DNA of 64,000 nt from Botryllus schlosseri (GCA_051294905.1 CM119383.1:2914001-2978000); one strand, 5' to 3'; shown: positions 13,578 through 58,334, counted from the stretch's first letter. The notes: a model not told the origin generated them from the letters alone. Made by a program: numbers and translations.

Positions 13578-16500
13578 CTAGAAGTGCAATATAACGGTGC
13601 GCACGACTCCTGACGAATCTCCGAACGCGACCAATCGTTCCGTGACCGCGCACGCGTTAGTTATCGGGCTCGAGTTGTAGTATTGGCCGATCTGCTTCCA
13701 ACCACCTTTCTCCCATATCTTGATCGTGGAATCGCGAGATGTCGTGATGAAATGCCGCCCGCCATCAAGTATAGAAGTAACTATGTTGTCGTGAATCTTC
13801 ATTTTGGATCCGTTACCCGTGTGATACAAATATCCAAGGTTACTTCCCAGCAGTAGAACTTTTCCAGACTTTTGATCTTCCGCAGCGTGCACGAAACAGC
13901 TGATAAGATCATCCTTATCCAGTTCCACATTTTCCACCGAGACTTCAGTACCTCTGCTGCCATAAACGTATCTGGGATCGTCAAATCCATATTCATCAAT
14001 AACGTTCCGGTAATCACTGCACACAGCATCAACTTTGCAATCCTCGACGTACGAGAACTTTCCAAGTTTCAATACATTACTGCTATCCTCTGTAACAATG
14101 TCGCAATAGCTCGGAACAGCACCACCAAATGCAATTTGGTAGCATTCGCGGGGAGCTCTTGAGGTGTCAACATCTTGGTGAGGATGTGTGTAGTTATAGG
14201 TGTCGATAACGACAATTTTTCTTGTCCTGTTCGCATAATCAGGGTACACATCCTCGACACACCATACCACCTGCTTTCTATCGTAGGAAGATGTTGCAAA
14301 CACATTTTTCCGAAGCCTACACAAATCAGTGATGCATCTGTCGTGAAGTTTGGCTTGGTATTGCAAAGAAAGACGATTGTGGTCCGTAATTTCCCACAAG
14401 TATACATGACCAGCGCTGCATGTGGTAACCAATCCACCGTCCACTGTTGCTACCCCTGTGACTTCACCGATTTGCCTAGTGACGGTGGATGAAACTCCCA
14501 GATCCCAAGCCTTGATCATTCCAGTTGATGCTTGTGAAAGAATATGCGCATCTCCGCATACTTCCAAGGACACAACAGACTTGGCGTGCTCGCCGAGTAT
14601 GTGAATTTGTTGTCCAGTCAAAGGTTTCCACGTTACCAAAGAGGCGTCATTTCCTGCGCACAAGACGTCGAAATTTTGCATTTGCATTCTGGACGCATTC
14701 CTTTTGCTGTTGTTCGCTCCTAATTTTTGCTTGTTGTGTTCATCGTTCCATTCTTCAGCATCAACCTGAGTAGCCCAATCAACATTACGATCTTCGACAG
14801 GATTTCCCGAATTCTCATCGTCCTCATCATCTTCTATACTGCAACGTTGAATGAAATTAACATCACAACAGTTGGTCCTGCTTTGTGTATCAACGCTGGT
14901 GATCAGTGTTCCTTTGCTAGACCACACTTTGACAGTACAGTCTTCCCCACCTGTCGAGACGACACACCCCATTTTATACATCACAGACGTCACTCCTGAT
15001 AAATGCCCCGTCAAAATACGAAGCGGGGTATCGTAACTGTCTTCCTTTACACTACCCGACGATGGTGGGCTTTTCCAGATCTTCAGAGTCGAATCGTTCG
15101 AGCCTGTAACAACAGTATCGTCGAGATCGTGCCATGCGCAACACGTTATCCAATCCTTGTGAGCTTGATGGATGGTAAGAATTGGAGAGATGTTTTTTTT
15201 ACGAGCCCCAGAAGAGATTATATTGACGTTCCTCATTTGATCATCACTAACAACATCCCAGTAGCATAGTTTCCCATCTTTTCCGCCGGACAGCAGCAGA
15301 TTTCCATCTGTATTAAAAGCGAGACAGGTAACCGCGCCTTCGTGTTCACGAGCTGATTTTGAGTGCGACACATTCACAACATCGGTCCTGTCGTTATTAT
15401 CATTGGAATCAGCCAGTTGCGATGTAATATCTTCCAGATTCCACAACAAAACTGAGAAATCTTCACTGCCAGAAGCCAACCACTTCCCAGCACACCCGGA
15501 AGCTAGCACAGGCCCGGTGTGTCCCTCAAAAATCGCCACCACAGCCTTAGAGCTCACATCGACAGCTTTCAAAGTGCTGTCGTAACTACCAGTGATAACA
15601 AGTTCCAATTCAGGCGCAGGGTTCGAATCCAACGAGAACAGAGAATGGAAGATATCGCCAGCTGTCTTTTCTCCAGCAGACGGGCCCCAAGCGACACAAG
15701 AAATCGCAGACTCGTGAATCTTGTCCGAGTATATGGGATACGGCAGTCTTGAATCATACATGCTGAAAATACCTTCATGAAATCCAGCAGCGATGGTCGA
15801 TTTATCGTAGTTATATTTGCAGCAGACAATGTTGTCACGTTCCTCTTTGCTGTCAACATTGTAACGCATAGTTTTCTTCCCAAGCCGAGACCTCCAAACC
15901 GCGATTTGAGCAGTGTCTTCATTTGCACCAGCCCCACCGCTGATAAGATACTTTCCGTCTGCAGAAAACAAGACCGATTCAGGAGATTGCAGGTATGCTT
16001 CACCGAAATTACCAATCGCAGTGCCTGTATCGGAAGTCCACAATCTAACTACGGTCTCATACTTTGAACAAGACGCGACATAAGTCCCGCACGCAGAAAA
16101 CCTCAGCGCAGTGACAGCTTTTGAATGATGACGAATCACCGCTACTCTCTTATGAGTGTGCAAGTCCCAAATTTGAATCGACGCATCCCACAGTCCAGTT
16201 GCTACTCTGGCTCCGTGCGGATGAAAATCCATGCAGTTAACAGGCGATCCAGTCATCACTTGCTTAACGAGACGGTATTTAGTCGCTCCCCAAATCCCAA
16301 TAGACCTATCGTGAGACGCGCTGGCAAAAATAGGCATCGAATTGCCTTGACTTGTTGGACGCACCGCAATCGAAGTAACCGCGTTTCCATGAAGCTTCAG
16401 ATCTGCAATTTTGTGACCGGCCTTAAAATCCCATGCGATCATTGTACCGTCACTTGCAGCTGAGACTAGAATTGTGGTTTTGACAAAACATACAGCAGTC

Positions 16501-19500
16501 ACGGAATTACAGTGACCAAGATAGTCAATAGAGTTCCCGGTACTCTTCTCAATCAATTTTACTTTCCCAGATAGGGTACCGGCCGCAAAATAACGCCCAG
16601 TTCCCAACACAGTAACACAAGTGTGCTCATCTCCGAGTTTGGAGTTTCTGTAAGTCTGAACCACAGAATGGGCCGTTTGATCATGTATTCCGGACTCCAT
16701 GACCACCATGTCAGACTGAGTGTGATAATCGAGCTTGGTCAAAGCATCGCAGCGCGGGTGACTTCCATATTCTTGGTTGATGGCTTCTTGGTATACCATG
16801 TTTGGAAATTTGGTGATAATATCGAGAGTAGATTTTACGAATCTTTCCATCTGCAGCCACGGCTTTGGACTTTCTTCACTTTTCATTCGTTTTGAAATTA
16901 TCCCAGCTTTCTCTTTGAGCAATTCAAAGTCTTCCAGTAAACTCGCGCCGACACCAAGTTTACATTTCAACGCCACAAATTCAATAGAGCTCAACAAATT
17001 TTCCAGGCCTTGTCGCTGTCCAGATTGGGAAAGATGGGTCGGCAGACGTTTCAAGCAGTCCACCAATAAGAAACTATCGACATCATGCTTTGTGGAATCC
17101 CATATCTTTTTCATGTAAAACCCAGCAAGTACCAAGTGGCACTTTTGAACCAATTCGCCTTTGGCAAGGTATTTCTCGAGCAGCACTTTCTGATATACAG
17201 AATGTCTGAGCATGACAGCTCTACCTTGACGAGTTTGTGACCAGGATATGAAAGATTTCAAGGAATTGATTGCATTGAACACGACTACTTTGGGAATATT
17301 GCTGTCGTCGGCTGAAAACCAACAGGATATCGCTTCGTAGAGGTCGTCATCCAAAATCATCCATTTGTCGCAGCAATGTAGAATACCAATAATCGCAGGT
17401 ATCAGATGCGGATATTTGGCAAATTTCGATTCAACTTGTTCCAATTGCCATTTCAACGAACCCACCATATCGTGAGGTATCACTTTCAGTGTTTCGCCGA
17501 GACTTTCAAACGTTTCACTAACGCGGATGATGTCGCAAATATTGGCGAGATACATCGGATTGACGGAGCCCTTTTTAGACATCAGCGCTTGAAGCTGGTT
17601 GTTGAAATGCGATTCGTCCAGTTTTTTGCTGTGTTTGCCGAGCGCGCAACGCACGATATCTCTCTTGTCGGATATTGTCAGTTCCGGAATCGCAATAAAC
17701 GTCACGCAATCCAAATGCTTCAAAGCTTTATATGCGTTCCCTCCTTCGTTACAAGAAACAACCAGAGTGATTTTTTCTTTAGCTATCTTAGTTATCCAAT
17801 CGAGACTGTCGAAATGATCAAGACCGTCCAAAAGTATATGCACAGTACTCTCAGCCGTTGAGTTTATCCTGCGGAAAGTATTTAGCAGCTTTTTGAACAT
17901 ACCGAACAGACTGGCACTTTCATTGTCAACGTTGAAATCCAACTGACACGCATCAGAAATCGCCTTACAAATACAGCGAAGTGCGTTGCCTGCAATTTGC
18001 GAATTCCGAAGTTCAGACTGATTCGCTATAATCGAAGATCCATACGGTAAACGATTGTGGATATTTGCGATTATCGACGTTTTACCGCTGCCTATACCTC
18101 CCACAATTGCCAAGACAGAGTTTTGACCATTCAGAGCTTTGATCTTTCGCATGATAGCGGACATCAAAGAATTTCGGCCAACAAAGTCTTGTTGATACGA
18201 CACCTGCTTGCGCTCACTCGATTCTGTCTGCGTACCAAAATCCATGTCTGCAATCTCTTTTAATTTACTTCTCAAGTCATTCTCCACCAATGCTTCGAAA
18301 TCCTCTAACCCCGAAAGCTTCACTTCGCCATTCTCAATCTTGTCAAATTTCGGCGCGGAAGCGTTCCCAACATAATGACCGCTTTCAAGCACTCGACTCT
18401 TCAGCTGTTTTAATTTACTCGACTTCTTGGAGTCCTGTTCGAAAAACAGGGGTTTCGCTGATTTCGGAATCGACGATTTCATTTCAGATGAATCGCGAAT
18501 GTAGAAAAGGCATATCTTGTTCTCCGAGTCCCGCCGAAAAGCGGCTTGCGCAATTTCCAGTTCTGTAATCGACCTCGATTTGGGATAATCCTCCAACCAA
18601 TCTGATTCATCGTCAGGAAAACCGTAGTCACGCGGCACCCATCCGTAACGATCACCAAGCAATCCGATGAATATGTCACATTTTCTAACCTCGTCCAGAC
18701 AGATGGATATATTCCGCCCAAACCGAGTGTCCTCTCCTGATATCCCCCATCTCAAGTCCGTCTCTAGAACGCGGATTTTCATATTCTCAGCCCACTCGCG
18801 TATCCTCGGAAATATCCAAGACACTAACGCGTCTCTCTCGTTGTTCATGTCTTTTATGGTCGATGATATAAAAACTCGTACCGTCTTCCAAGGCTTGATC
18901 GGTTTTGACACAACAGGCGGCAGACTATCGAAATTATCATCATTATTCTTTAATTCAGCCAAGTTCAACCTCATGTCGACTGTTTCCACGTGCTTTATTT
19001 GAGCTTCCGCGTTCCCGAGGGCGATAAACTTCAAAATCTGATCGCTGTACCCACTGAAAGTGACAACGTCGCTTTCATTCGAGACTGAAGTTTTCTTTCC
19101 ACCGAGGTCGACTTTGTAGCACATCAAACTACTATTCACTTCGCTCTTATACCCTCTCAAAAAGTGACTCAACAAAACATCTTCGCGATCTTTCATCTGA
19201 GAATGCAGCACCACTAAGTTATCCATCCTCACCCGTTCCGTGAGTAATTTACACAAGAATTTTTCAGGCAACGATTTCGAGTGCTCGTGCCACACAAAAG
19301 CAAGTTTCGCAAACGCCACTATCCTTTTCAAATTCTCAAGTATACCGCCCTTCTCCAATTCAACTACTTTGTATGCTGAATCTGAGTAGATGATGAAAGT
19401 ACAAGCTTCGCAAGAGTACGCACACATTAGGCCAAGCAAGATCCCGATATCTCCAATAGTACGGGACGGCCCCAGTCCTTTTGACGTAGTGCAATTCTTT

Positions 19501-21419
19501 TCGAACATTCCAGCTGAAGCTTCACATAGAACAACTGTATGACCGGTGATTGGTGACACATTATTCACGGTTGCGATTTTTACACATTTATTGAGAGCTT
19601 TGCGATATCTGTCGATCATGTCCTCATCGTAACGAAACGCAGATGCATACTTTCTCGCTACAGCTCTTCTGATGACATCTATCTTTTTCTCTTCGTCACT
19701 TTTCGGAGTCGTGTCTCCATATTTTCTTTTGTTTTGATGCTGCTGATGTTTGGTCAAAAAGTATTTGACACCGTGCTGCTTGTACATCTTTTGCTTGGCA
19801 AGTTCTTTCTCCAGATCCTCCAAGGCTTCGTACGCGGAGAAAAATCGAAACGGAAACTGCCTGCTTCTAGACACTGCTTTTTCGTTGGTGAGCGTTTTAA
19901 TAACCTGCTGATGATGCTTTTCCGATATTCCGGCTTGGATCATGTTACGCAAATTTCGCAGCATCGCCATGAAAGGAAGCTTGCGATGGTCCAACAGACT
20001 TTCCCACGTTTTAGCCAGGTTTCCTTTAGCGGAAACCTGAGTCTCCCAAGTCTCGGGTACTTGCAGTTTCATTCTTTTTTGCGACAACGCAGAGTCCCAT
20101 GTTCCTTCCAAGCCGCATTTATAAAATTCCTCCATGCTGACCGGGTATTTTTTACCCAAAATACACATGACAGGGTAAGCGGGTTTCACGATATGTAGTT
20201 TACGGATCAGATACTTCAGCGTGTAGCTAGGAACATACAGCTTCGGAGCTTCATCCTTTTTTTCGCTACTTTCCGTTTTTTTTTGAGTCTTCTCTTTTCG
20301 TTTTGCCTTTTTCGATTTGTCTTTATTGTATTTTGCCAGTTGATACTCGTCAAAATCTGGGAATTTCGCGACCATTATCTTTCTCAAAGCGGTCGGTAAA
20401 TTATTGGTACCGATCTTCCCGTCGGGGTCATTGAGACTTTGATAAAACTCTGCAATTTGAATCCAGTCGGAAGGCAGAACTACAGCCTTCTTGAAATACT
20501 TCTTCAAATACGGTCTGCATTCCGGCACGATTGAAGCTACCGCCGCTAGTAAATTACAGGTAGTACGGATATTCAACTCTGCTCTGCAATACAGTGCGAC
20601 TTTCAACACAAATTCCGGGTCTGACAAGGCAATCTTCTTGCATAAACCAACGATTGTTGATCTGGTGTGATCTTTTTCACTAAACCACACTGGGTTATTG
20701 AGCAAAGACGAACACGTCACCGAAATCAATTTTTCCTTAAGAACAGAAAGTTGCGACTTTACAATCTTAGTAGTTTGTTTCATCAAGTCAGGCGATGGGA
20801 AATTTACTTTGCTAGTCCCTACAAGGTCTGAAATCAACTTCACATCATCTCTACTCAAAGGCTTCTCTTGTGGTACAGGCGGTAACACTGTCTCCTGACC
20901 GGGGGAGCGCACAGTCGGTGCGGTTTCTACGAGGGTTGAAGTTCTCATACTGAAAGATGGAGCCAGCAATGTATTCACGGTTCGAAGTACCGGCCTGTGA
21001 CTTTGTGTCAAGAGCTTGTTCTTTCTGAGATGTCCGAAATCGCCATTCTTCTTACCATCTAACATGGGGTTTGGTATAAAAGTTCTTTTGGTTGGTACGG
21101 TAGAAGTTTTGAGGCGAGTTGACACATCCTTACGAGTCAAATTCCTCTTAAGATCCAAACAACTGTGGGAACTACGCCCAACGTTCGATCCTTTTGTCAG
21201 TTTCTCGAGCAATACATTTCTGGTGTGCTGCACAAGAGTTGGTCTTGCGCTTTCAGATTCAACTTGCTTTATTCGCACTTGCGGAATTGGTGCACGTTGC
21301 AAAAGCGGGTTCTTCAGCGAACCTGACCTTTTCTTCTTGTAGTCATTGAGAATACCGTTGTCTGTAGTGACAACCATGTTGATTGGTATCTTAGTGTAAC
21401 AAGTAGGCCTAAATATCAA
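13578..21419 (-). CDS. TEP1: Telomerase-associated / vault protein TEP1, single uninterrupted ORF
   Basis: TROVE motifs (DPEFVLKVALYCRAELNIRT; KLPFMAMLRNLRN; RQFPFRFFSAY), vWA-like segment, DUF4062 (VRVFISST...DLRWG), NACHT P-loop (GGIGSGKTS), many WD40 repeats. The ORF track starts at a TTG; the first in-frame ATG is at 21377. Confidence 0.93.
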   Translation of the reverse strand: MIFRPTCYTKIPINMVVTTDNGILNDYKKKRSGSLKNPLLQRAPIPQVRIKQVESESARPTLVQHTRNVLLEKLTKGSNVGRSSHSCLDLKRNLTRKDVSTRLKTSTVPTKRTFIPNPMLDGKKNGDFGHLRKNKLLTQSHRPVLRTVNTLLAPSFSMRTSTLVETAPTVRSPGQETVLPPVPQEKPLSRDDVKLISDLVGTSKVNFPSPDLMKQTTKIVKSQLSVLKEKLISVTCSSLLNNPVWFSEKDHTRSTIVGLCKKIALSDPEFVLKVALYCRAELNIRTTCNLLAAVASIVPECRPYLKKYFKKAVVLPSDWIQIAEFYQSLNDPDGKIGTNNLPTALRKIMVAKFPDFDEYQLAKYNKDKSKKAKRKEKTQKKTESSEKKDEAPKLYVPSYTLKYLIRKLHIVKPAYPVMCILGKKYPVSMEEFYKCGLEGTWDSALSQKRMKLQVPETWETQVSAKGNLAKTWESLLDHRKLPFMAMLRNLRNMIQAGISEKHHQQVIKTLTNEKAVSRSRQFPFRFFSAYEALEDLEKELAKQKMYKQHGVKYFLTKHQQHQNKRKYGDTTPKSDEEKKIDVIRRAVARKYASAFRYDEDMIDRYRKALNKCVKIATVNNVSPITGHTVVLCEASAGMFEKNCTTSKGLGPSRTIGDIGILLGLMCAYSCEACTFIIYSDSAYKVVELEKGGILENLKRIVAFAKLAFVWHEHSKSLPEKFLCKLLTERVRMDNLVVLHSQMKDREDVLLSHFLRGYKSEVNSSLMCYKVDLGGKKTSVSNESDVVTFSGYSDQILKFIALGNAEAQIKHVETVDMRLNLAELKNNDDNFDSLPPVVSKPIKPWKTVRVFISSTIKDMNNERDALVSWIFPRIREWAENMKIRVLETDLRWGISGEDTRFGRNISICLDEVRKCDIFIGLLGDRYGWVPRDYGFPDDESDWLEDYPKSRSITELEIAQAAFRRDSENKICLFYIRDSSEMKSSIPKSAKPLFFEQDSKKSSKLKQLKSRVLESGHYVGNASAPKFDKIENGEVKLSGLEDFEALVENDLRSKLKEIADMDFGTQTESSERKQVSYQQDFVGRNSLMSAIMRKIKALNGQNSVLAIVGGIGSGKTSIIANIHNRLPYGSSIIANQSELRNSQIAGNALRCICKAISDACQLDFNVDNESASLFGMFKKLLNTFRRINSTAESTVHILLDGLDHFDSLDWITKIAKEKITLVVSCNEGGNAYKALKHLDCVTFIAIPELTISDKRDIVRCALGKHSKKLDESHFNNQLQALMSKKGSVNPMYLANICDIIRVSETFESLGETLKVIPHDMVGSLKWQLEQVESKFAKYPHLIPAIIGILHCCDKWMILDDDLYEAISCWFSADDSNIPKVVVFNAINSLKSFISWSQTRQGRAVMLRHSVYQKVLLEKYLAKGELVQKCHLVLAGFYMKKIWDSTKHDVDSFLLVDCLKRLPTHLSQSGQRQGLENLLSSIEFVALKCKLGVGASLLEDFELLKEKAGIISKRMKSEESPKPWLQMERFVKSTLDIITKFPNMVYQEAINQEYGSHPRCDALTKLDYHTQSDMVVMESGIHDQTAHSVVQTYRNSKLGDEHTCVTVLGTGRYFAAGTLSGKVKLIEKSTGNSIDYLGHCNSVTAVCFVKTTILVSAASDGTMIAWDFKAGHKIADLKLHGNAVTSIAVRPTSQGNSMPIFASASHDRSIGIWGATKYRLVKQVMTGSPVNCMDFHPHGARVATGLWDASIQIWDLHTHKRVAVIRHHSKAVTALRFSACGTYVASCSKYETVVRLWTSDTGTAIGNFGEAYLQSPESVLFSADGKYLISGGAGANEDTAQIAVWRSRLGKKTMRYNVDSKEERDNIVCCKYNYDKSTIAAGFHEGIFSMYDSRLPYPIYSDKIHESAISCVAWGPSAGEKTAGDIFHSLFSLDSNPAPELELVITGSYDSTLKAVDVSSKAVVAIFEGHTGPVLASGCAGKWLASGSEDFSVLLWNLEDITSQLADSNDNNDRTDVVNVSHSKSAREHEGAVTCLAFNTDGNLLLSGGKDGKLCYWDVVSDDQMRNVNIISSGARKKNISPILTIHQAHKDWITCCAWHDLDDTVVTGSNDSTLKIWKSPPSSGSVKEDSYDTPLRILTGHLSGVTSVMYKMGCVVSTGGEDCTVKVWSSKGTLITSVDTQSRTNCCDVNFIQRCSIEDDEDDENSGNPVEDRNVDWATQVDAEEWNDEHNKQKLGANNSKRNASRMQMQNFDVLCAGNDASLVTWKPLTGQQIHILGEHAKSVVSLEVCGDAHILSQASTGMIKAWDLGVSSTVTRQIGEVTGVATVDGGLVTTCSAGHVYLWEITDHNRLSLQYQAKLHDRCITDLCRLRKNVFATSSYDRKQVVWCVEDVYPDYANRTRKIVVIDTYNYTHPHQDVDTSRAPRECYQIAFGGAVPSYCDIVTEDSSNVLKLGKFSYVEDCKVDAVCSDYRNVIDEYGFDDPRYVYGSRGTEVSVENVELDKDDLISCFVHAAEDQKSGKVLLLGSNLGYLYHTGNGSKMKIHDNIVTSILDGGRHFITTSRDSTIKIWEKGGWKQIGQYYNSSPITNACAVTERLVAFGDSSGVVRTVILHF

Positions 21420-22814
21420 ACCATAATAAGTTAGGAGTCTGTAGAAAATGGAAAAAGCGATATATGTTATAACGATGGCTCATGAAATTATAGGCTAAAG
21501 CACGAGACTATAGCAAATTCATCATCAAGCTTTATAATGGCAACACAAACTAAAATAATCGCATACCATATCATTGAAAAGAATATAAATTATAAATGAA
21601 TTCACATTACTGATAACCTTTTCAAAGAAATTGGTGCAAGAATTAATTTTACTTAAGTCAACGGAAAATCTTTTGAGACCAGGAATATTGCTAATATGAG
21701 GCATAGTATTCGATGTGGCACTGTGTGCCTGACACAGTCAATAAGTCATGGTTTCCATTGTTGAAGCGTTGAGACGGAAGTTTCAGATGATTGCAATAAA
21801 GGAGAAAGACTTCAATGAGAGTGAATAGTAGAAAAAACTATCGAGTATATCACATACTCTTATATATTGCATTCTTATGCAGGAGAAGGCCGATAAATAA
21901 GGAGACAAGGAAGATCAATCACTAGGTTATTAGCCGAATATGCTGGTAACAATAACATCCACAAAACAGGGATAGTCACACCGTGAAAGAAGTCATTAAA
22001 ATGACCTCGAGTTTTCACAGTGAAAAAAAGGAGGGCAAAGTAAACTTGCACTCACATGAGAATTGTTCATCAATATAGATTGTAACACAATAGGCAGCAT
22101 TATTGTACAATACTGATCTGTAAGGTGCTAAGATTAATGGATTATCCATGCTTAGCATAGATAACAGGTCTATTTACACAGTCCATTGATTAATCGCTGT
22201 AATTATTTGCGTATCCTACTCTACTGCAACAAGCATATTGATGTAGTCAATGAACTTCACTAACGATGCATAGGACACCATCTTCTTAAACTTGCAGCAA
22301 ACACATGAAAATTAAATTCGGAAAGTTAGAGCTTCGCTAGATGATATTTTCTTATACAGATAGTTGAAATTTACATGCAAGTATACCGAATCAATTTCCT
22401 GTTTTGAATGATAATAATGACAATCAACACTTTGCGATGATGTGGTATAGCATTTTGTAACACACAGCCATAAACTAAGAATTTACTACGATTGACATAA
22501 ATTCAATGAGGGTATTTCGAACTCAAGCAGCAACAGTGATAAAGCTAGCAGCTGCATGAACAATCTCAGGGATACTGTCTGCCAAAACATTGATGAATGC
22601 ATTCATACCGACACATTAGCTACAAGACAAGAATATGAACCAAAATAGAATACCCATATATGTATATATTACTTCTTACATCACTTGTATAAAATGTCAA
22701 GAAATACAATCGGCGTAGTAGAATATCAAACACTATTGAATATCCGCATAGCAGATGATCAACTAGTGAGAGCTAAAATTAAAACAAGTACACAAATTGT
22801 TCATTTAGCTTTCC

Positions 22815-25800
22815 TCAACTACCTTCTGGGTTACTGCTTTCAAAAAGATGCATCCCATACCAACGGTCTGGTACAACTTGAAAATACCGGTCCATCGCTT
22901 CACAAAAACGGTTTTTGTACAGTTCAGGAGACACGACCGTCGGCATCGATCTCGAAGACGACCATTTCACCACCATTTCCAACTTCTTATCCCACGTGAA
23001 AGTGCGAATGAAATCGATAATTCCGATGAAAATCTCCTTGTTTCGATCAATCCCGATGAGCAACGAATAATCCATGATCAAGTTTTCAGACAAAAAATCG
23101 GTGTCGCGCTGCATCGCGTTTTTGAAAAGAAATTTGGCGTGCTCGTGTACATAGATAGGATTTTCGCACATTACTCTCAAAAGATTTTCATCCAATAGAA
23201 CGACGTCATCGTTTTTCGACGTAGATTCTTCACCGTTAGTGTCCTTAGGCACATTCTTCGCACGTCGGTTTCGTACCGACCCCTTCAAGTCATAGATATT
23301 GTCAATTTGTTTTTGGTAAAACAGATTCTCAATAACCAAAACGTCTTGTTTCAAACTTCTCCCGGTTTGAGAATTACGGAACGATATCCGATACACTCCA
23401 AGGATTTTCGACAACGCGGTGGCCTCACTGTTATCAATACAATCAGTAAGATACTCCACATATTTAGGAGCAAATTCCAAAAACGATTGCATTTCCAAGT
23501 TTGACATTTGTTTCAGTATAAACTGATCGTCCTTTGTCTTGTGAAAGGTGGAGCCAGATTTCCCGCCAACCGCCAACCATTTCGCGCTACGCGACAAAGA
23601 CTCTAAATACTGATTCTCGCCACCTTCCAGAATACCGGCACGAAATTTTTGGAATAAATCGGCAAAGTATACTTTGCAATAAAACTTTGTGGTCTTGTCG
23701 GAAAATTGAACTTCGACATGATCAGTTGAAACGGAGTTTGGTATTTTAATCTCCTGATCTATTTCATCCACAATCGGAATATCATCAGATAAGTTATCAA
23801 ATACAGACTGATTTTGTGGAAGCTCTGTAGAATTCGGAGTAGAATGCAGTTTGATTGATACATCGCTATGCTTTAACGACCTTTTATACGCACTTGAGCA
23901 AAGTGTGTACGCGATAATCGAAGTCGGTTCGGCATCACGTACAACAATCTCCGTGCTAAGACATTCCGGTAACAGATAATGCTCGTCTGCAGGAAAAGGC
24001 GTCGGAGGTGCCTGCAATAGATTGCCAGGCAACAAACGTATCACAAGAGACTTCATGCTTGAACCGGTCCTTGTCATTCTCCTTGGCTGCTTGTCATGAC
24101 TTTTTGCGTCCGCGGAGATACCGCGCTTCAATTGCCGAGCGCTTTTACCGTTGGAAGCGTCTTCCGGGTAGTCCACATCAGACGACCATTGAGATGACGT
24201 GGGCGGGCAGCTTGAAGCACCCAGAAATTCAGACTCGACATCGGACCCACCTTCCGGTGTCTCGCATTCCTCCTGCACTGTAGGGTGCAAGCGTTTTCTC
24301 TGCACACGAGGCGAAGTAGAATGTTTCGATTTGGGCGGATTCCAAAACGAATTCCTGTCTTTATCGTAAGCGTCGAGTAGTTTTTGATTCCAAGTTTCTA
24401 CCATTTTTGAAACGTCACATTTCAGTTGTAATACGGAAAAATTCAGTTGGCGTCTCAAATTGTCGTCAAGCACAGGCTCATCGGACATCTTACCACTGCT
24501 AGTGTCCCACGCGTCCTCAAATGAATCAATATTATCGAAATTCGTGTAACCATTACTCTTTAGTAGCACTTCCATCTTTTCAATTTGTTCAAACAGCAAG
24601 CTTTTCTCATCGTTGAGAACGGAGACCAATTCCAAAAAGTATTTTTCACGAGACAGCGGTATCTCATCTGTGTTTGAATCGACAGTGCCTCTTCGCTCAC
24701 GAGACGAATTCACACAATCACGAATGTCCTCCGAGGAACTCTCGATTTTATCCACCAGTAATCTGATCACATAATACGCGTCACTCGCTGTAATAATATC
24801 ATCGTCATATCCGCCACTTCTGTGAGCTTCGGCTGGATCACAGTGGGTTGGTATCGATAAGAAAGCAGAGGGGAACACTATTTCGTTCAATTTCACTGGG
24901 AAACACTTGAATGCCGCGATCAAATCATGGAATAAAAAGTATTGGAATCCTGTAAAAGGTTTCATCTCCCAGTGCTCATCGAAGATTTCCTGTTTCGTGA
25001 TACCACGTTGTTGATAAGGCACCGATCCCATTTGAGGTATAGTAAGTTGTCCGAAATTAATCTCAAGGTATTTGGCAAAAGACATATACCACGCGTCGCG
25101 TGACATGGTTTTAATGGCCGATGACTTTTTAGTGTCGTGGTCCCAAGTCCAAGTCAAAATACTGGATTGCTGGAAAGGTTTTGACAGTTCCTTCAACAGA
25201 ACAGACATGCACATGTCGCCGTGCACGAAACTACGTACGTGCTCGACCATAGGCCGTCTACAAGTTGGGTTTGGACAGTGATAATTTGGTCGAAAACAAT
25301 AACGCTCCAAAAACCCTCCAAGTGTAATATCATTGCCACGATAGAAATCGATGTCCACAACCCAAGGAAGAACGCAGTAATACGGCGCATTGGGAGATTG
25401 CACGCTATAACTACTAAACAGCAATGATATATGTTGATGATTGTAAGGATCCAAAGAATCAATGTGACATTCATTTGTCGAATCAGAAACAGACGTAGTA
25501 TCATCGTCATCAATAATTTTATCCTCAACTTCCGTAGGTTTTATTTCATCATCTTTGACTCTATGGAAAAGTGTGCCAGCGTGAGCACGGAAGCTGGATA
25601 ACAAATCCCGCACTTCCTCAGAAGACGCAGATTGAGTAAAAGAACATGTAATAAACTCATGAAGGGAGTCGTCGTTCATATTGAGAAATATGTTGCTTTC
25701 GTTAACAGAACCAAACTTATCACTGCCATGCTTCGTCGACGTGGAATACTGAGAAATATTACCTCCAGATCGAAGCTGAGATTGTGATGGCTTCTTCTCT

Positions 25801-28800
25801 TTGACAGGTGGACCAAATATCATATCAATCATAGTCTGTTCCCAAGTTGAAACACCGTGATTAATGTCATTGCGTTTCGTGGGAGAAAGCATCTTGTTGA
25901 TAGCGGGACAATCGTCTGTCCCGTTTCGCTTGTACGGTTGAGTGTAGCAGGATACTGGCTGGGGTGTTACATTTTTGGATACGTGGATTTCAGTTGTTCC
26001 ATCCCCAGTCAGATCACTTGAACTATGTTGTTTTTTATTGTTGTCATCATGAGTCTGACTGTGATTATATTCATTGGTGGACTCTGTGTGGCGCGAGTGT
26101 GAAAGCCATGGCTTGTCTAAAAGGGACGAGCTTGATACTGTAACTACAGATTTCGGATTGTGGCCAACATGCTGACTGGAATCTGTCTTGTCGGATTTTC
26201 GAGACGGGAAATCGAGAATTTTGTGTGGCAAATATTTCCAATTTGATGATTTCTGACCTTCGACAGTGTACAGGTAAGGCTTTGCGGGCATAATTAAAGG
26301 GGACGTTGATAGCAGCAAAGAGTTCAATCTGTTTTCAAATAGGTCTTTATTTTTCTGCATCTCGGAAATCGCACAAGTGTCGTTCTCTTGCAATGGTCCA
26401 AATACGGAATCAGTCCCTGAAAGTTGCGTCGTTAACATCCGAGATTCTCTGACTGTTGCGTAACCTGAGAATGAAGCGCCCTTTTGTGACATTACAGTCT
26501 CGTTTAAAGGCACAATCAAGCTTTGAGTGCCGTCAAGAGATTTTGACGTAACGTCTGAATCCGACCGCATACTTTTCGCAGACAAATGCTTTTTTAGTAG
26601 CTTACCTAAATTGTGTTGGTCGATAAGATACGACATTTCAAGTCGGACATGAAACATGGCACGTACCAAAAAACGGAAGACATCCTTGACTTTTGACAAT
26701 TCCTTCCAAACCTCAGATTCGTCTGAAGATTTTGATCTCAAAATCACGGTACATCCATACATTGGATTACACCCTTCAAAATACAACAACGCCTTTGGCG
26801 TTTGTTCCATTCCAAAGCACGGGAGATCATGATTTTTCAAATAGAATCTTGAACATCTACCTAAATGCGCTTGTAATAACTGATCAATCGATTGGACAAT
26901 ATCGCCTTCAGTGCTGCGTGCCACTCTTTCCATGACCGATTGCTTCACATTGACAACGACCGTGATTCCAGCTTCGAGCAACAACTCCTGGGCAATTCTT
27001 GAAACTGTGCACTGCACCAATACAACATCGGGACGTTTGGAAGTTATTCTTGTTACGAGATGCTTGTAAAATTCACGTTCTTGCCTCAAAACCGGATCTA
27101 AAGCGGACAGTCTCAACTGAACACGCTCGTATTCTAAGGGTATTGCTAGCAGCAAAATAGCAGGGTTTAAAATATCAGTTCTCATGTGCTTATTAACAAC
27201 GTTATTTGTGAAAGCGACACCATTGATAACTTGAGATTCACGCCTGACACCATCAGGAATCTTCTTAATTTGGACATAATGCACCACATCCATGTTCACA
27301 GTCGGATTGGGGTTGATATAAAATGACGCGTGTTTCGCCAAGGGCACCAAAACTTCAGCCCACGCTAAATCCAACCCTTTCTCAAACAGTAACTGCCTCA
27401 AAAACGCCAAATCGTGTCTCGTATACATTTCCCGCAGCCACTGGCAAGCACGTTTATCGCACGATTCAAAAGACTTTGACTGAAAGTCCACATCTCTCCA
27501 TCCCGACAGCGGTTGGTGCCACGGGTGGTTAAGATAAGTCCCGTTCCACGTAATGAAGTTTCGTAAATAATCTGCATTTATGCTGGTGAGACTCGAGTCA
27601 TCAAAAGAAGGGTTGAACGGAGTGGAGTTCTTCGAGTGCTTACTAGCATCGGGTATATCCATGCTAGAAGATCGCGTATATTTTATAACTTCTTCGCCTT
27701 GATCGATTTCCACGTAACTCGACAAAGACATGACCGATTGCTCTGACACGCTTTGTTCTTCATCAGAAAATATCAACGTATCTGTAGGAGCAGTAGACTG
27801 ACCGTCACTAGGGCTGTAAGTCAAATTAGCGGCAAAATATCCATCTGTTTCATCCTCGTTATCACCAGAACACTTGATTTCCTGTACCCAAACAGGTTCT
27901 CGTTCAATAAGACTTTGATCGTCTTGATTATCCATAGCAGAAAAATGATCTGGATAAATTTCGATTTTTGGAGTTCGAACATTTATCGATTTCTTGTAGT
28001 TCTGATACAGAACATAACCGTCTTGAAATAATCCACCCATGTCAAGTACCGATTTCATCCACAGTCCTTCGCACAAGGCTTGTCCGATCGCGCACCCTTG
28101 CGTTCTGTCATAGGCCACATCATTCTTGATTAACCAGTCCACTAGTTCTTGCCCTGTTATGCAACTGGAATACTTCCTCAAACGAAACCTGTGGTCTCGA
28201 AACTCGATGCCTTCCTTCTCGTCGCAAACCTTTTTCCAGATCATACGCAGTTGCACTGAATCTTTCACCAACATATTGCTGACATTGTCCCCCAATATAG
28301 ATTGCGAGGACTGCTCCTCTTTAGCATCGAAAAGAAAACTAGGACTCTGCATGCCGTTAAGATTCTCTGTAACTGGAGATAATATACTCAAAGCGCTTGT
28401 TGGACCAGCGTCAAAAAGTTGATCATCGCTGTAACTACTGTCCGTCCTTTGCAAAGTACCTGCCTCTCTCCGCTGTCTAATGTTATGACTGTTGAATAAT
28501 TGATCATAAACGCCGCCTTGTACAATACCAAGGCTTTCCGTTGAATTGCCGTCGTTGTGTTCGTCTTGTGCTGAGTCTATTGTATTGGCACTTAGACTTT
28601 GGCTGACGACCTTTGCAACGTCAGGTTTGTTGCTCTCGGCGAACTGCAACACTAATTGGCAGCAGTACATGCAGGATCGTAACTTACCTTGCAGCCCCAT
28701 AATTTTTCCGGAAATCACTTGATTACAACAGCGACTGCAGAAGATCTGCCCGCAGATGCGGCAGTGATGACGTCTGCGGAACGTCGTGAATTTTTCACCG

Positions 28801-29249
28801 CATTCGTAACACTCGTGACATTGCTCATCAGGCATCCAGTATTGTCGTAACTCTTCTGCATTTGAAGCAGGTGAGGTAGGGGCGGGTCTGCCGTCATCAG
28901 AGTCTGGGGACTGCTGGCCCCTTACCATCTTGGGTAAATCTTTAAAAAGTGTTGAAAATGATCGGATTCTCAAATGCACCTCGCTACCAGGCGGGTTAGG
29001 AAACAGTTTCCGATCATGAACCTTTCTTTTTGATTTACCCGATTGGTTCAAATCCAATACATTCGGTCTACGGGCGGCGTGTTCGGTCTGGGAATCAGAA
29101 GTGTCGGGAAGACTTTCCTGTGACTTCTTGCTACTAAATAAATCCAAAACGAACTTGAGAAATCCTGGTGTGCTTGAAGACTTCTCTTTTGGTTCACCAA
29201 ACGATGTCAAGGACGTAGGATCCGCAGATACTTGGTCCTTTTTATCCAT
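22815..29249 (-). CDS. PIKFYVE: 1-phosphatidylinositol-3-phosphate 5-kinase (Fab1/PIKfyve), single uninterrupted ORF
   Basis: FYVE (YWMPDEQC...RRRHHCRICGQIFCSRCC), DEP domain, CCT/Cpn60-like domain (IKKIPDG...NNVVNKHM), conserved Cys/His region (LGGFLERYCF), PIPK catalytic domain (GGKSGSTF, YDLKGS, MDYSLLIG, IGIIDFIRTFTWDKKLE). Confidence 0.96.
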   Translation of the reverse strand: MDKKDQVSADPTSLTSFGEPKEKSSSTPGFLKFVLDLFSSKKSQESLPDTSDSQTEHAARRPNVLDLNQSGKSKRKVHDRKLFPNPPGSEVHLRIRSFSTLFKDLPKMVRGQQSPDSDDGRPAPTSPASNAEELRQYWMPDEQCHECYECGEKFTTFRRRHHCRICGQIFCSRCCNQVISGKIMGLQGKLRSCMYCCQLVLQFAESNKPDVAKVVSQSLSANTIDSAQDEHNDGNSTESLGIVQGGVYDQLFNSHNIRQRREAGTLQRTDSSYSDDQLFDAGPTSALSILSPVTENLNGMQSPSFLFDAKEEQSSQSILGDNVSNMLVKDSVQLRMIWKKVCDEKEGIEFRDHRFRLRKYSSCITGQELVDWLIKNDVAYDRTQGCAIGQALCEGLWMKSVLDMGGLFQDGYVLYQNYKKSINVRTPKIEIYPDHFSAMDNQDDQSLIEREPVWVQEIKCSGDNEDETDGYFAANLTYSPSDGQSTAPTDTLIFSDEEQSVSEQSVMSLSSYVEIDQGEEVIKYTRSSSMDIPDASKHSKNSTPFNPSFDDSSLTSINADYLRNFITWNGTYLNHPWHQPLSGWRDVDFQSKSFESCDKRACQWLREMYTRHDLAFLRQLLFEKGLDLAWAEVLVPLAKHASFYINPNPTVNMDVVHYVQIKKIPDGVRRESQVINGVAFTNNVVNKHMRTDILNPAILLLAIPLEYERVQLRLSALDPVLRQEREFYKHLVTRITSKRPDVVLVQCTVSRIAQELLLEAGITVVVNVKQSVMERVARSTEGDIVQSIDQLLQAHLGRCSRFYLKNHDLPCFGMEQTPKALLYFEGCNPMYGCTVILRSKSSDESEVWKELSKVKDVFRFLVRAMFHVRLEMSYLIDQHNLGKLLKKHLSAKSMRSDSDVTSKSLDGTQSLIVPLNETVMSQKGASFSGYATVRESRMLTTQLSGTDSVFGPLQENDTCAISEMQKNKDLFENRLNSLLLSTSPLIMPAKPYLYTVEGQKSSNWKYLPHKILDFPSRKSDKTDSSQHVGHNPKSVVTVSSSSLLDKPWLSHSRHTESTNEYNHSQTHDDNNKKQHSSSDLTGDGTTEIHVSKNVTPQPVSCYTQPYKRNGTDDCPAINKMLSPTKRNDINHGVSTWEQTMIDMIFGPPVKEKKPSQSQLRSGGNISQYSTSTKHGSDKFGSVNESNIFLNMNDDSLHEFITCSFTQSASSEEVRDLLSSFRAHAGTLFHRVKDDEIKPTEVEDKIIDDDDTTSVSDSTNECHIDSLDPYNHQHISLLFSSYSVQSPNAPYYCVLPWVVDIDFYRGNDITLGGFLERYCFRPNYHCPNPTCRRPMVEHVRSFVHGDMCMSVLLKELSKPFQQSSILTWTWDHDTKKSSAIKTMSRDAWYMSFAKYLEINFGQLTIPQMGSVPYQQRGITKQEIFDEHWEMKPFTGFQYFLFHDLIAAFKCFPVKLNEIVFPSAFLSIPTHCDPAEAHRSGGYDDDIITASDAYYVIRLLVDKIESSSEDIRDCVNSSRERRGTVDSNTDEIPLSREKYFLELVSVLNDEKSLLFEQIEKMEVLLKSNGYTNFDNIDSFEDAWDTSSGKMSDEPVLDDNLRRQLNFSVLQLKCDVSKMVETWNQKLLDAYDKDRNSFWNPPKSKHSTSPRVQRKRLHPTVQEECETPEGGSDVESEFLGASSCPPTSSQWSSDVDYPEDASNGKSARQLKRGISADAKSHDKQPRRMTRTGSSMKSLVIRLLPGNLLQAPPTPFPADEHYLLPECLSTEIVVRDAEPTSIIAYTLCSSAYKRSLKHSDVSIKLHSTPNSTELPQNQSVFDNLSDDIPIVDEIDQEIKIPNSVSTDHVEVQFSDKTTKFYCKVYFADLFQKFRAGILEGGENQYLESLSRSAKWLAVGGKSGSTFHKTKDDQFILKQMSNLEMQSFLEFAPKYVEYLTDCIDNSEATALSKILGVYRISFRNSQTGRSLKQDVLVIENLFYQKQIDNIYDLKGSVRNRRAKNVPKDTNGEESTSKNDDVVLLDENLLRVMCENPIYVHEHAKFLFKNAMQRDTDFLSENLIMDYSLLIGIDRNKEIFIGIIDFIRTFTWDKKLEMVVKWSSSRSMPTVVSPELYKNRFCEAMDRYFQVVPDRWYGMHLFESSNPEGS

Positions 29250-29907
29250 GATACAGTCCCAGAACAGATAATGGAGTTGAAAACATTAAAATCTACTACT
29301 AAAGAAGTTATGTTATCTCTACATTAATATTTATGCACTGAGAAATGAAAGACGGATTACAAACTGATAATTTAAATCAAAACCATCATATTTCACAGTG
29401 GGTGAAAGATATTGTCTTTCTGAATGAGATGAAGCTACAGAAACAGAACAATATGACACCTGAAAGAAGATGAACATGCGAGGCCACACTGCACATATTT
29501 CAGTGTAGCTCTTATTGAATCAAGTGAACGTCATATTGAAAAGTGTGAACTTGTCGATTACGTGATAGATTTGATGCCATCTGGCCAAACTTTTCACACC
29601 AACTCTAAAAACTACAGACAAATTTGTTCCGATTTCCACTACCTGAAGTATAGGGTTGGTATTGGTTGAACAATAAATTTGATTACACAATTTTATCAGG
29701 CATCAACCGAGATCCACACAAAATTCCGATGGAAAAACACAACAATCATGAATAATCAAATGGATTTTAAAATGAAATCGTAGACAACACAATATCACTA
29801 TAGAATTTATCAGTCATTATAAAGCGATTTGTTTATCACGTATCAGAAACGTGACCTGATAATAGGAGGCAAAAAATAATCAATCAGTCCTATTATAACA
29901 GGTATTT

Positions 29908-31566
29908 TTAATCATTGTACAGGAAATACTTCTTCCGCATATCATCATTCGAAAAGTTGGGCACAAAATTAACCTTGACAATACTTTGAAACCCCTCAGG
30001 CAAGCTCGGTTCCTCGTAAGCTTTTCGATACTGATAGAACACGAAGTCCGGAACCTTATCATGCTCAGATAGTGACAGCTCACGGAATCTATTGTTATGA
30101 CGCGCATGCTCCATGGAGACTTGAAACACAAAGCATCTGCAATCGCAACCACGCGATTTGGCTGCATCAATATATCGTTTTCGTCCTGCCTTATCAGGGT
30201 TTGTGTTGTCCACAACAATACTTTGACCGTTCGCTAAAGCCTGATTGCAGGCCGCCACACATTTCTGCCAGGTTTTCATTGTATCTCGGTTCACGCACGT
30301 GTAACCTTTTGAGACCAAGTATTGCTTTGAAAAGAAAGATTTGCCACTTGCTGGGTATCCTACCATGATTATTACTTCCTGCTTCTTGCTTACAACATCA
30401 TCACTACCTTCGATTAAATTTACATTTTCATTGACGCTCTTCGGGTCAAATTCTGGCATGTTAAACTTTGCAGGCTTTTGGGACATGAAGAACTCCTCAG
30501 GCGTCTTAAACTGAATTCCCAGATTCAAAGCGAAAAGTCTATCGGCACACGAGAAATCTTTTTTCTTTTTCGGCGCCCAATCTTTTGGACGACCTGCGGC
30601 ATCGCCGACATAAAAACTATCGCTCATATTTATTGAAATCCCACCGTTTCCATGCGTTTGTAACCACTCCCAAGTTCCAATATTGGGTTTACGATTAGCG
30701 CTGCGTTTCGTAATCGCTATCACTTGAATAGGGATTCCAAGCTTTTTCAGTAAATTTCCAATTTTTACTTTAAAATCTTTGGGAGCTATTTTGCCCTTTC
30801 CAATCCCAAGCTGATTAGTGATGATCACAATTTTAAATTCATCGCGATGTAATGATTTGAGCCTGCCCGGTATCTCGGCATACAATATTCTCCAATCGTT
30901 ATGATCAACAGCAAACGTTTTTCCAGACGCGGTCGTAATAAGAGTACCGTCCATATCAAAAGCTGCAATTTTTGACGAGTTGAATAAATCATGCGGATTA
31001 TAAATCAGTAAATCTTCATAACCTGACCAGCCAGAGGCAGAATCAGATTTTATCCATAGCAGTGAATGAGACGGTAAATCCGTTTGTTCTTTCTTTGATT
31101 TGTTCACATTGGGTGTAAGTAAGTTGGATTTCTGTAAGAGACTTAATTTTTTTTGCACCTCAATTTCTTCACTGGTTTGCTCTGCAACTTTCCGCTTTTT
31201 GCTTTTCACACCTAAAAAATCATCGATGGTACGCTTCGATTGTGTTTTCTCTTCTCCCTTTTTCTGATTGCAGGTAATTGTATATTCGTAACAATTATCA
31301 ACCATGCAGAATTTGTCATTTGGCTTTAGTGTCTTGGTTTGTCCTTTTGGAACTTCTTCTCCATCGATTGTGGCAGAATTGAGGCCGTGTTGTTCCAGGG
31401 TTATAGTTCCGTCTTTGTAATCGGCAATTAGTGTTACATGTTGCCTGGAGCATAATTTATCTGTGATTTTTGTGACAGGGCTCCGTCCGAGAATAACAGA
31501 TGTGTTGTTTGGTAAATCTATTGGTGAATGTCTGCCGTCCGTGGAGCACACTTGAAAGTATGACAT
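29908..31566 (-). CDS. PNKP: Bifunctional polynucleotide 3'-phosphatase / 5'-kinase, single uninterrupted ORF
   Basis: N-terminal FHA (VILGRSP...CSRQHV), HAD phosphatase (AFDMDGTLI; YVGDAAGRP), kinase P-loop (GYPASGKS; DNTNPD). Confidence 0.95.
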   Translation of the reverse strand: MSYFQVCSTDGRHSPIDLPNNTSVILGRSPVTKITDKLCSRQHVTLIADYKDGTITLEQHGLNSATIDGEEVPKGQTKTLKPNDKFCMVDNCYEYTITCNQKKGEEKTQSKRTIDDFLGVKSKKRKVAEQTSEEIEVQKKLSLLQKSNLLTPNVNKSKKEQTDLPSHSLLWIKSDSASGWSGYEDLLIYNPHDLFNSSKIAAFDMDGTLITTASGKTFAVDHNDWRILYAEIPGRLKSLHRDEFKIVIITNQLGIGKGKIAPKDFKVKIGNLLKKLGIPIQVIAITKRSANRKPNIGTWEWLQTHGNGGISINMSDSFYVGDAAGRPKDWAPKKKKDFSCADRLFALNLGIQFKTPEEFFMSQKPAKFNMPEFDPKSVNENVNLIEGSDDVVSKKQEVIIMVGYPASGKSFFSKQYLVSKGYTCVNRDTMKTWQKCVAACNQALANGQSIVVDNTNPDKAGRKRYIDAAKSRGCDCRCFVFQVSMEHARHNNRFRELSLSEHDKVPDFVFYQYRKAYEEPSLPEGFQSIVKVNFVPNFSNDDMRKKYFLYND

Positions 31567-32160
31567 ATTATTTAAACTGGAATATACTAAACTGTATAGA
31601 TCTAGGAGGAAAACGAGAATTTGTTAGCATCACATTTTCAAGTAATTCATCATTCCCTCATATATCACCAATTACTAATCATTTTTTACACAAAAATTTT
31701 ACGAAGGTAAAATATCAATTCTTCAACACAAATGAATTAGACAGGACTCTAAGAATACATACTGAACTTCAATCAAACTGTGCCTGGGTAATTGCATCAT
31801 AATTATTAGATTGAGATAATTTTCGCATCACACTCTAAAAACATACCGTCACAATCATCAAACCACATAATCAGAAAGGCAAGACTACATCATACTTTAT
31901 TACTGGACCCATCTGCGCACATTACCAATGCATTTTCATCTTACTTTGCTTAGGCCTATCGAGGGCATGAAATGTGAAAGACCAATTATTGACATTTGAA
32001 TCAGCAAATCCATTAATTTATAATGCATTGAATTTATGTATGATACAAATACTCAAAACCAAAACAGTGAAGAGAAAGTACCATATTTTGACAATATTGT
32101 GGTGGGAAAAACAGGAAACAAGACAAAAAAACAATTGAAATGTAATACGACTATACGAGA

Positions 32161-32442
32161 TTATCTGTGATCAATCGGAGCCTCTGGTTGCTTGATCCTC
32201 ATCGAAACACAGTCCCGGTCAATGTCGTAATATGAATATTCCGAGTAAGAAAAATATTCCGTCGTGTTGTACTTGGTGGAATCTGCCTTCGACGCTTCAG
32301 TTGGTGTTGGGCTTGGCACATGATCTTTCGATTTTGGGGCGGAAGATCCAACTACCTTATTTTCATGACTGGCAATCAACCCAGTCCAAATTGTTCTTCC
32401 GCTGGGGAAAATTTTAATGTTCCTCAGAATATTGAGAGCCAT
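32161..32442 (-). CDS. NDUFV3: NADH dehydrogenase flavoprotein 3 (complex I 10-kDa subunit)-like, 93 aa
   Basis: Basic N-terminus with almost no acidic residues, resembling a mitochondrial presequence; C-terminal YNTTEYFSYSEYSYYDIDRDCVSMRIKQP matches my recollection of the NDUFV3 Y..Y.F.D.......R.PQP motif; ATG at 32442 follows a TTTCAAG acceptor. Confidence 0.7.
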   Translation of the reverse strand: MALNILRNIKIFPSGRTIWTGLIASHENKVVGSSAPKSKDHVPSPTPTEASKADSTKYNTTEYFSYSEYSYYDIDRDCVSMRIKQPEAPIDHR

Positions 32443-57850: not shown

Positions 57851-58334
57851 TTATCATACGCTGATTCCGAATCGAATTTGTGGAACGGGTTTTATCAGGA
57901 CTGTTCCAGTTTTGAATTAGCAGAGGTTGGATGTAGATGCGGCAGTTGCGATTTTAATCGTTTCGCATTTTTAAATCATTTGGAGTTTTGCTACGTCAGT
58001 ATAGCTCGATCAAAACATTTTTCGACAGCCACAATGCGGATAAATGATTAGGAAGCAGGCCGTCCACTCCTGCACAAAATTGTGGACAGCTGATTTGTAA
58101 GGTTATATCGACAAAACTCGCAATAGGGAAGTAGCCTATTTCCGCGTTGGTCCTAATTTGGAATATTATAAATTAGATCTACCACTCTCATACGGAATTT
58201 TGGGCATGCTGATTAGCCTACTGACATATCCTTACAAGCGATATAAATATCCCCGTTTGTCTGAACTTGCGACGGTTACATTTCAACGTAGGGGCCATCA
58301 GGCATGTGTTACCTACTTTGAACCAAGTTTCAGC

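Follow-up and report, generated by a model that had tools for sequence, protein, structure and literature searches.

Four genes on the minus strand of a 64,000-nt stretch of Botryllus schlosseri DNA (GCA_051294905.1 CM119383.1:2914001-2978000; this whole stretch is hereafter the window, and all coordinates are positions in it unless another sequence is named) form a block at 13578-32442 that is probably a tunicate-type spliced-leader (SL) operon-like array. The genes are NDUFV3, PNKP, PIKfyve and TEP1. On this reading the array was assembled stepwise, its PIKfyve gene is a retrocopy that replaced its own parent, and the block is one of many of its kind in the genome, which measures 495 Mb. The first-pass annotation of the window had described the same block as an island of adjacent genes on one strand without coding introns or recognisable transposons, and had inferred wholesale, regionally clustered loss of introns, for which recombination with cDNA acting across a linked or polycistronic unit seemed an attractive explanation. 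The description stands, as does the loss of ancestral introns, and the idea of a linked or polycistronic unit fits the geometry that the RNA defines. Regional loss in place on an already linked block, however, is contradicted for PIKfyve by its state in Styela clava and Clavelina, and is unsupported for the other genes.

The block spans 18,865 nt, of which 86% is coding, and consists of four uninterrupted minus-strand frames, placed head-to-tail in the order NDUFV3 > PNKP > PIKfyve > TEP1 with nothing between them (Table 1). The coding lengths of PIKfyve and TEP1 are 6.4 kb and 7.8 kb; the TEP1 frame stays open as far as 21419, and its first ATG lies at 21377. Pfam identifies FYVE, DEP, Cpn60_TCP1 and PIP5K in PIKfyve, FHA, PNK3P and AAA_33 in PNKP, and TROVE, DUF4062 and WD40/TEP1 propellers in TEP1, while NDUFV3 is matched by PF15880 with 29.4 bits against a cut-off of 25. 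The best database matches of the block's proteins are the named orthologues, and the proteins show full-length family architecture together with their catalytic motifs: DMDGT and GYPASGKS in PNKP, the FYVE cysteines, GKSG and DYSL in PIKfyve and the P-loop GGIGSGKT in TEP1 are all intact. The lengths of the four proteins are near those of their human counterparts. The RNA evidence consists of one bulk RNA-seq run, used as raw reads, and three assemblies, all placed on 28001-34000; over the part of the block that it covers (28001-32800) there is no splice joint.

Six-frame searches of the whole genome found PNKP, PIKfyve and TEP1 in a single copy each, all remaining matches being generic FYVE or WD40 domains, and found no intron-bearing parent of any of the three. 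The intron-containing paralogues that had been suggested as something to look for elsewhere thus did not turn up, and the possibility that the block holds extra retrocopies beside living parents was rejected because the searches with the three large proteins gave no parent. Contamination with cDNA, or an artefact of assembly, was rejected as well: independent assemblies of three species show the intronless arrangement complete with intergenic DNA. The view already taken at first pass from the catalytic motifs, that the genes of the block are functional, is supported; they are single-copy genes with a genuine loss of ancestral introns.

The best named matches of the window's PNKP are all ascidian, with Styela clava first at 61%, followed by Phallusia, Clavelina and Ciona. 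A maximum-likelihood tree of PNKP has the topology (((window,(L015 species, lgn2)), Styela clava), lgn4), sister to (Clavelina,(Phallusia, Ciona)), with support values of 95-100%; by the sequence of this protein, the window is placed in Stolidobranchia. The comparison of exon structure and synteny that had been recommended was run on this framework. In the related species L015 the genes follow one another in the identical order, NDUFV3 > PNKP > PIKfyve > TEP1, on a 26-kb contig; the proteins of L015 and of the window are 67% (PNKP), 60% (PIKfyve) and 55% (TEP1) identical. Each gene span in L015 equals three times the number of residues plus three, and each gene is therefore intronless. Styela clava has the pair only: PNKP and TEP1 are adjacent on OZ123520.1, 644 bp apart, both intronless and with nothing between them, and PIKfyve lies on OZ123522.1, with its coding exons, 27 or more in number, spread over 45,288 bp. 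No NDUFV3 was detected within 10 kb of Styela PNKP, and the 2.1 kb upstream hold no suitable open reading frame (ORF); in this comparison a late gain of NDUFV3 in the window's clade and a loss in Styela are indistinguishable. In Clavelina all three genes contain introns: PNKP spans 3.4 kb, TEP1 20.9 kb, and PIKfyve, which has at least 21 exons, 20 kb. The neighbours of these genes are unrelated, and PNKP and TEP1 are on different chromosomes. PNKP is intronless in Styela, L015, lgn2 and lgn4 and intron-bearing in Clavelina; TEP1 is intronless in Styela and L015 and intron-rich in Clavelina.

PIKfyve provides the clearest case. It has no introns in the window, whereas the Styela gene has at least 26 and the Clavelina gene at least 20, and at least 12 of its exon boundaries are common to these two species. 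Since these boundaries coincide, the introns are ancestral, and all of them were lost in the window copy. The position of the gene differs as well: in the window and in L015 it is flanked by PNKP and TEP1, and in Styela it is on a separate chromosome. A new locus together with the loss of all introns is the mark that retroposition leaves, and because PIKfyve is outside the block and intron-rich in Styela, it entered the block already intronless. An intron-bearing parental PIKfyve is absent from the genome, where the six-frame search met only generic FYVE fingers besides the window copy. Judged from these sequence comparisons, the best interpretation of PIKfyve is that a processed retrocopy took the place of its intron-rich parent; an older insertion, with subsequent loss in Styela, would leave this conclusion about its nature as it stands.

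The simplest order of events given the tree would begin with an intronless PNKP > TEP1 pair that was in place before the split from Styela. In the window's clade, a processed PIKfyve would then have inserted between PNKP and TEP1, and NDUFV3 would have joined upstream; finally, the intron-rich parent of PIKfyve would have been lost. Insertion inside an SL-processed unit would supply expression to a PIKfyve copy that had no promoter.

SL processing is directly visible for the first gene of the array. NDUFV3 is expressed at about 30-70x, with a raw-read depth of 27-71x over its 3' untranslated region (UTR). At its 5' end, 49 raw reads stop matching the genome at 32489 and continue into non-genomic letters made up of a template-switch tail and a leader; on the RNA strand these letters read ...ACATGGGG + ATTGGAGTATTTGGTTGTATTA. 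The genome at the junction has a pyrimidine tract followed by tatAG. When the AG shared with the acceptor is counted in, the leader reads ATTGGAGTATTTGGTTGTATTAAG, identical to the published 'Chordata 1' spliced leader, GATTGGAGTATTTGGTTGTATTAAG (PMC3795323). Exact copies of the 24-nt leader occur at 236 dispersed sites in the genome, versus 0 for a reversed control. Among six sampled copies, a GT donor follows in four; the sequence downstream varies, a CTGGACC...GGTC motif recurs about 50 nt on, and two copies share their upstream sequence. Only some of the copies resemble SL RNA genes, and the 236 sites represent either a family of heterogeneous SL RNA genes or a repeat that derives from the SL.

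At the other end of the NDUFV3 mRNA, poly-T loose ends in eight raw reads and one contig mark polyadenylation at 31601, from where it is 35 nt to the PNKP ATG. The NDUFV3 > PNKP junction is thus within the distance of less than 100 bp that is used to define operons in Ciona. One PNKP contig ends at 31577. PNKP contigs run on for about 560 nt after the stop and end near 29,352, and the first bases of PIKfyve contigs are at 29,282-29,286, that is, about 65 nt or less from the PNKP 3' end; by its contig ends, the PNKP > PIKfyve junction probably also falls under 100 bp. On the upstream side of NDUFV3, read depth declines from 24x through 3x to 0.3x across 32,400-33,000, and this decay over some 300-450 nt beyond the acceptor places the start site near 32,800-32,950. 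A PNKP transcript contig of lgn4, a stolidobranch that branches early, reads adapter + TATTAAG + TTAAG + ATG, with the last 7 nt of the leader standing 5 nt before the start codon. A PNKP contig of lgn2 (L050) carries 548 nt of non-coding sequence upstream of the ATG; it is either read-through RNA or plain DNA and was left unused as evidence. Exact look-ups of the window's PNKP and NDUFV3 proteins in transcript assemblies returned no match. As a separate observation, position 32088 in the NDUFV3 3'UTR is A in all 97 RNA reads and in two assemblies and T in the genome, for which the simplest explanation is that the individuals sequenced carry different alleles.

Taken together with the gene order, these data suggest the following course of expression. 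Transcription would start about 300-450 nt upstream of NDUFV3. The 5' outron is exchanged for the 25-nt leader at 32489/32488, and the NDUFV3 mRNA is cleaved and polyadenylated at 31601, as the reads themselves record. RNA that continues past this site would receive an SL cap by trans-splicing within the next 25-35 nt, giving the PNKP mRNA, and the same capping about 65 nt or less past the PNKP 3' end would give the PIKfyve mRNA. TEP1 could share SL processing through a candidate acceptor 61 nt before its ATG.

The block is not a singular island. It is an ordinary feature, one example of a genome-wide habit of the lineage. Uninterrupted loci make up 4 of about 10 in the CCT/Cpn60 family (frames of 554-608 aa), 6 of about 21 in the SNF2 family (816-2,002 aa) and 1 of about 12 in the PI3K/PIKK family. 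The last of these is ATM (C7:12522589-12531888), a single frame of 3,100 aa with TAN and PI3K/PI4K kinase domains that is longer than any intronless housekeeping gene in the window. Pooled over the three families this amounts to about 11 of about 43 loci, or about 25%, which is close to the range of 15-38% for single-exon genes in Ciona; kinase domains, moreover, are found by the dozen inside frames of 300-1,350 aa. The first-pass annotation had named, as the finding that would tell against it, intronless housekeeping genes that were both common and randomly placed. They are indeed common, at about 25%, but they are not random and tend to cluster: an intronless host gene of at least 500 aa lies within about 10 kb of three of five seed genes, mostly on the same strand. 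The probability of such clustering is about 0.001 at a rough random expectation of 5% and about 0.06 at a generous 20%; with five seeded neighbourhoods and rough expectations, these small samples of base rate and clustering are indicative only, which counts against the wider claim.

Two neighbourhoods illustrate the pattern. At C9:19,924,000-19,946,000 a BEACH-WD40 gene (1,607 aa), a RED/IK gene (539 aa) and a CCT subunit gene (569 aa) lie on one strand, separated by 397 bp and 6.4 kb, with an uninterrupted SNF2 helicase frame (816 aa) about 6 kb off on the opposite strand. On C6, HSP60 (608 aa) and a CCDC113/96 gene (550 aa) are 1.15 kb apart, and CEP104 (920 aa) is convergent. Among the long frames of the five neighbourhoods there is only one transposon, a Ty3/gypsy pol. 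It is a 1,481-aa frame at C6:21,432,603-21,437,045 with reverse transcriptase, RNase H and integrase of Ty3/gypsy type, beside the intronless HSP60, CCDC113/96 and CEP104 genes; by its sequence it seems undamaged and may be supplying reverse transcriptase at present. The same surveys met near-identical exon series occurring twice, about 83-86 kb apart, for an SNF2 gene (C17:2,620,493 and 2,703,416) and a PI3K-family gene (C14:1,963,380 and 2,049,348), which suggests recent segmental duplications or uncollapsed haplotypes.

Besides the small size of the genomic samples, several results weigh against an SL operon-like array with a captured retrocopy. In the reads and contigs of this species on 28001-34000, no leader was seen on PNKP or PIKfyve and no transcript bridges two genes. 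The PNKP-PIKfyve gap is defined by contig ends rather than by mapped poly(A) or SL reads, and the PIKfyve-TEP1 gap, at 1.4 kb from ORF to ORF, lies beyond the RNA coverage, so that TEP1 may own a promoter. RNA depth is at least 20-fold apart between NDUFV3 and PNKP/PIKfyve, and a difference of this size along the array therefore needs post-transcriptional differences or internal promoters. As for retroposition, the borders of PIKfyve carry neither a run of seven or more A nor a target-site duplication, and matches to the leader there do not rise above the shuffled background; canonical poly(A) signals are confined to 31901 and the region downstream of TEP1. At first pass, the lack of a poly(A) tail and of a target-site duplication had been taken as an argument against simple retro-pseudogene formation. 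Against retroposition it has no force, since the event is older than a split at about 60% protein identity, after which the loss of such scars is expected; their absence weakens the retrocopy claim but leaves it standing. The vacated parental PIKfyve locus could likewise not be recognised: the 50 kb around C16:4.709 Mb, where the orthologue of the upstream kinase of Styela lies, hold neither a PIKfyve remnant nor a conserved Styela neighbour, an absence that is uninformative. For PNKP, TEP1 and NDUFV3, finally, retroposition is an analogy only, and the ordinary scrambling of synteny in tunicates could explain their relocation relative to Clavelina.

We have weighed three other accounts of the block. 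The one that survives best, though we regard it as unlikely, is that there is no operon at all, and that four independently transcribed intronless genes are packed together by gene density, with promoters inside the 3'UTRs of the genes upstream. The strong variation of expression along the array, the width of the PIKfyve-TEP1 gap and the lack of a bridging transcript in the covered RNA would all suit it, and with about a quarter of the sampled conserved genes uninterrupted, intronless genes are plentiful. However, a poly(A) site 35 nt from the next ATG and a PNKP-PIKfyve distance of about 65 nt or less agree with the Ciona definition of an operon, gene order and orientation have been kept between two species at 55-67% protein identity, the tail of the leader precedes the PNKP ATG in lgn4, and other intronless genes in the genome are also found in same-strand runs.

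Somewhat less probable again is the original proposal, in which linked genes, perhaps of one transcription unit, lost their introns in place by recombination with cDNA that was possibly polycistronic. Styela separates this account from an SL operon-like array that captured a processed PIKfyve: there, PIKfyve is outside the block, intron-rich and on another chromosome, and PNKP > TEP1 are already adjacent and intronless. Because PIKfyve is elsewhere in Styela, linkage did not precede its intron loss, and in Clavelina even PNKP and TEP1 are on different chromosomes. What speaks for loss in place is that all four genes are intronless, on one strand and spaced as in an operon, and that no parental copies are left in the genome. 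For the older PNKP > TEP1 pair it is a possible course, as no sampled stolidobranch has the pair with introns or lacks the pair. The remaining account, a move of PIKfyve as genomic DNA by segmental translocation with later loss of introns, possibly under selection for compactness in the operon, deserves very little credence: the lack of visible retroposition scars and a branch from Styela to the window's clade long enough to hide several steps are in its favour, but a 45-kb gene with 27 exons would have had to enter a spacer of about 0.6 kb and then lose at least 26 introns, all precisely and with no intermediate in either descendant species, where one retroposition accounts for both changes.

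Table 1. Features of the four-gene block and its borders in the Botryllus schlosseri window
Feature	Position	Strand	Remarks
Palindromic miniature inverted-repeat transposable element (MITE), 611 bp	12540..13150	.	inverted repeats I3 + I4; lower edge of the repeat-free block
TEP1 (telomerase/vault-associated protein 1) coding sequence	13578..21377	-	2,599 aa from first ATG; single exon; last gene
PIKfyve-TEP1 spacer	21378..22814	-	1,437 nt; single-copy in genome; largest spacer
Candidate TEP1 trans-splice acceptor (TTTTTCCATTTTCTACAG)	21439..21456	-	61 nt upstream of ATG; proposed by sequence inspection
PIKfyve coding sequence	22815..29249	-	2,144 aa; single exon; ATG at 29249
PNKP 3'UTR, then PIKfyve 5' end	29250..29907	-	contig ends, three runs
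PNKP coding sequence	29908..31566	-	552 aa; single exon; ATG at 31566
NDUFV3-PNKP intercistronic stretch	31567..31600	-	34 nt; three AG acceptor candidates (cag, tag, cag)
NDUFV3 3'UTR	31601..32160	-	560 nt; ends at poly(A) site 31601
NDUFV3 (complex I subunit) coding sequence	32161..32442	-	93 aa; single exon; first gene
NDUFV3 spliced-leader acceptor (tatAG)	32487..32491	-	mature mRNA starts at 32487 after the leader; 49 raw reads
Outron and probable promoter region of the array	32490..32950	-	head-to-head with plus-strand gene
Spliced-leader acceptor (tatAG) of divergent neighbour, outside the array	33675..33679	+	contigs of run X15 carry the leader before 33677

The surroundings of the block differ from its interior. 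None of the repeat families or inverted-repeat arms found in the window falls inside 13578-32442, and repeated 16-mers cover 0% of the block, compared with 11% in the flank to its left and 4% in that to its right; only 2.7 kb of the block is non-coding, so there is little room for any transposon. The PIKfyve-TEP1 spacer, which is presumably the PIKfyve 3'UTR together with the TEP1 5' region, contains no repeats, A-runs or relict leader. The MITE at the lower edge begins 430 bp past the TEP1 stop codon. A first look at its family gave at least 2,558 candidates genome-wide, and the full-length copies are 93-95% identical, which indicates a recent expansion. Frames in the flanks are short, and the right flank shows one 66-nt GT..AG intron (33854-33919); among ORF fragments of the flanks, Pfam returned only a weak DCDC1-like doublecortin match at 46553-47116. 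Further along, 58,100-63,900 is a tandem array of units of about 610 bp, at least eight copies, each with a tRNA-like segment (GCCCGGCTAGCTCAGTCGGTAGAGCG...). The plus-strand neighbour that begins at 33,677 has a depth of 150-200x in run X15 and is itself SL trans-spliced, at 33677/33678; the 66-nt intron belongs to this gene, and the doublecortin fragment falls among its later exons. In L015, the genes that diverge from the NDUFV3 array are an intronless ankyrin-repeat gene (180 aa) and a NUBP/ParA-like gene (318 aa), on one strand and 378 bp apart (L015:2412-4288); the divergent neighbour in the window is a different one.

Satou et al. 2008 (PMC2760879) define operons in Ciona as same-strand pairs of genes less than 100 bp apart, with trans-splicing of the downstream genes. 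Single-exon genes make up 38% of Ciona operon genes versus 15% of other genes, and 60% of first operon genes, an enrichment whose cause was left unexplained (PMC2760879). The window block resembles these operons in that its genes share one strand, the poly(A) site of one gene comes very close to the 5' end of the next, SL trans-splicing takes place, and the first gene is short and has a single exon. It differs from them in belonging to another ascidian order with a different, 25-nt leader, in that all four genes are single-exon, two of them very large, and in that trans-splicing of the downstream genes and a polycistronic RNA are here inferred, with a third junction of 1.4 kb from ORF to ORF. 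Single-exon-rich operon arrays are thus already described, and the window block is a further case that hints at a mechanism. In addition to what the Ciona study reported, our comparison points to arriving processed copies as the source of single-exon genes.

Replacement of a gene by its own retrocopy is also a known process. Orphan retrogenes (for example Maeso et al. 2012, cited in PMC3342872) are fully processed copies that have assumed the role of an intron-bearing parent from a new locus, the parent itself having disappeared. The genome studied here likewise retains a single intronless PIKfyve with its intron-bearing parent gone. Unlike orphan retrogenes, PIKfyve landed between the members of an intronless pair, in an SL-processed unit, and presumably recruited no promoter of its own; it is also an unusually long housekeeping gene, and has neither a poly(A) tract nor a target-site duplication. 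In dinoflagellates, processed cDNAs tagged with the SL often re-enter the genome and stay expressed, yielding many intronless genes (PMC6050394, PMC5585692). Those retrogenes are known by their 5' relict leaders, whereas none is detectable at the window block; dinoflagellates are, moreover, an unrelated lineage, and the window copies are replacements rather than added members of a family.

For those who annotate ascidian assemblies, the block carries a caution: long single-exon genes there are real, and neither cDNA contamination nor pseudogenes. Tunicates are the closest living relatives of vertebrates, and their genomes have lost many introns and gained operons, a link that has been noted and left unexplained. 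The species compared here form a series of three stages: Clavelina, in which the genes are intron-rich and PNKP and TEP1 are on different chromosomes; Styela, with an intronless pair and a multi-exon PIKfyve elsewhere; and the window's clade, in which a processed PIKfyve lies inside the pair. We tentatively suggest, as a generalisation of this series held with less confidence than our account of the block itself, that tunicate SL operons may serve as landing pads for processed cDNA copies and may grow by retrocopy capture. The idea can be tested genome-wide, by asking if fully intronless genes change place and do so preferentially into SL-processed units. If it is true, a retrocopy without a promoter would be expressed at once and could replace its parent, even in the case of a gene as long as PIKfyve and perhaps ATM, and the capture of such copies would account for the excess of single-exon genes in tunicate operons and for much of the intron loss in the lineage.

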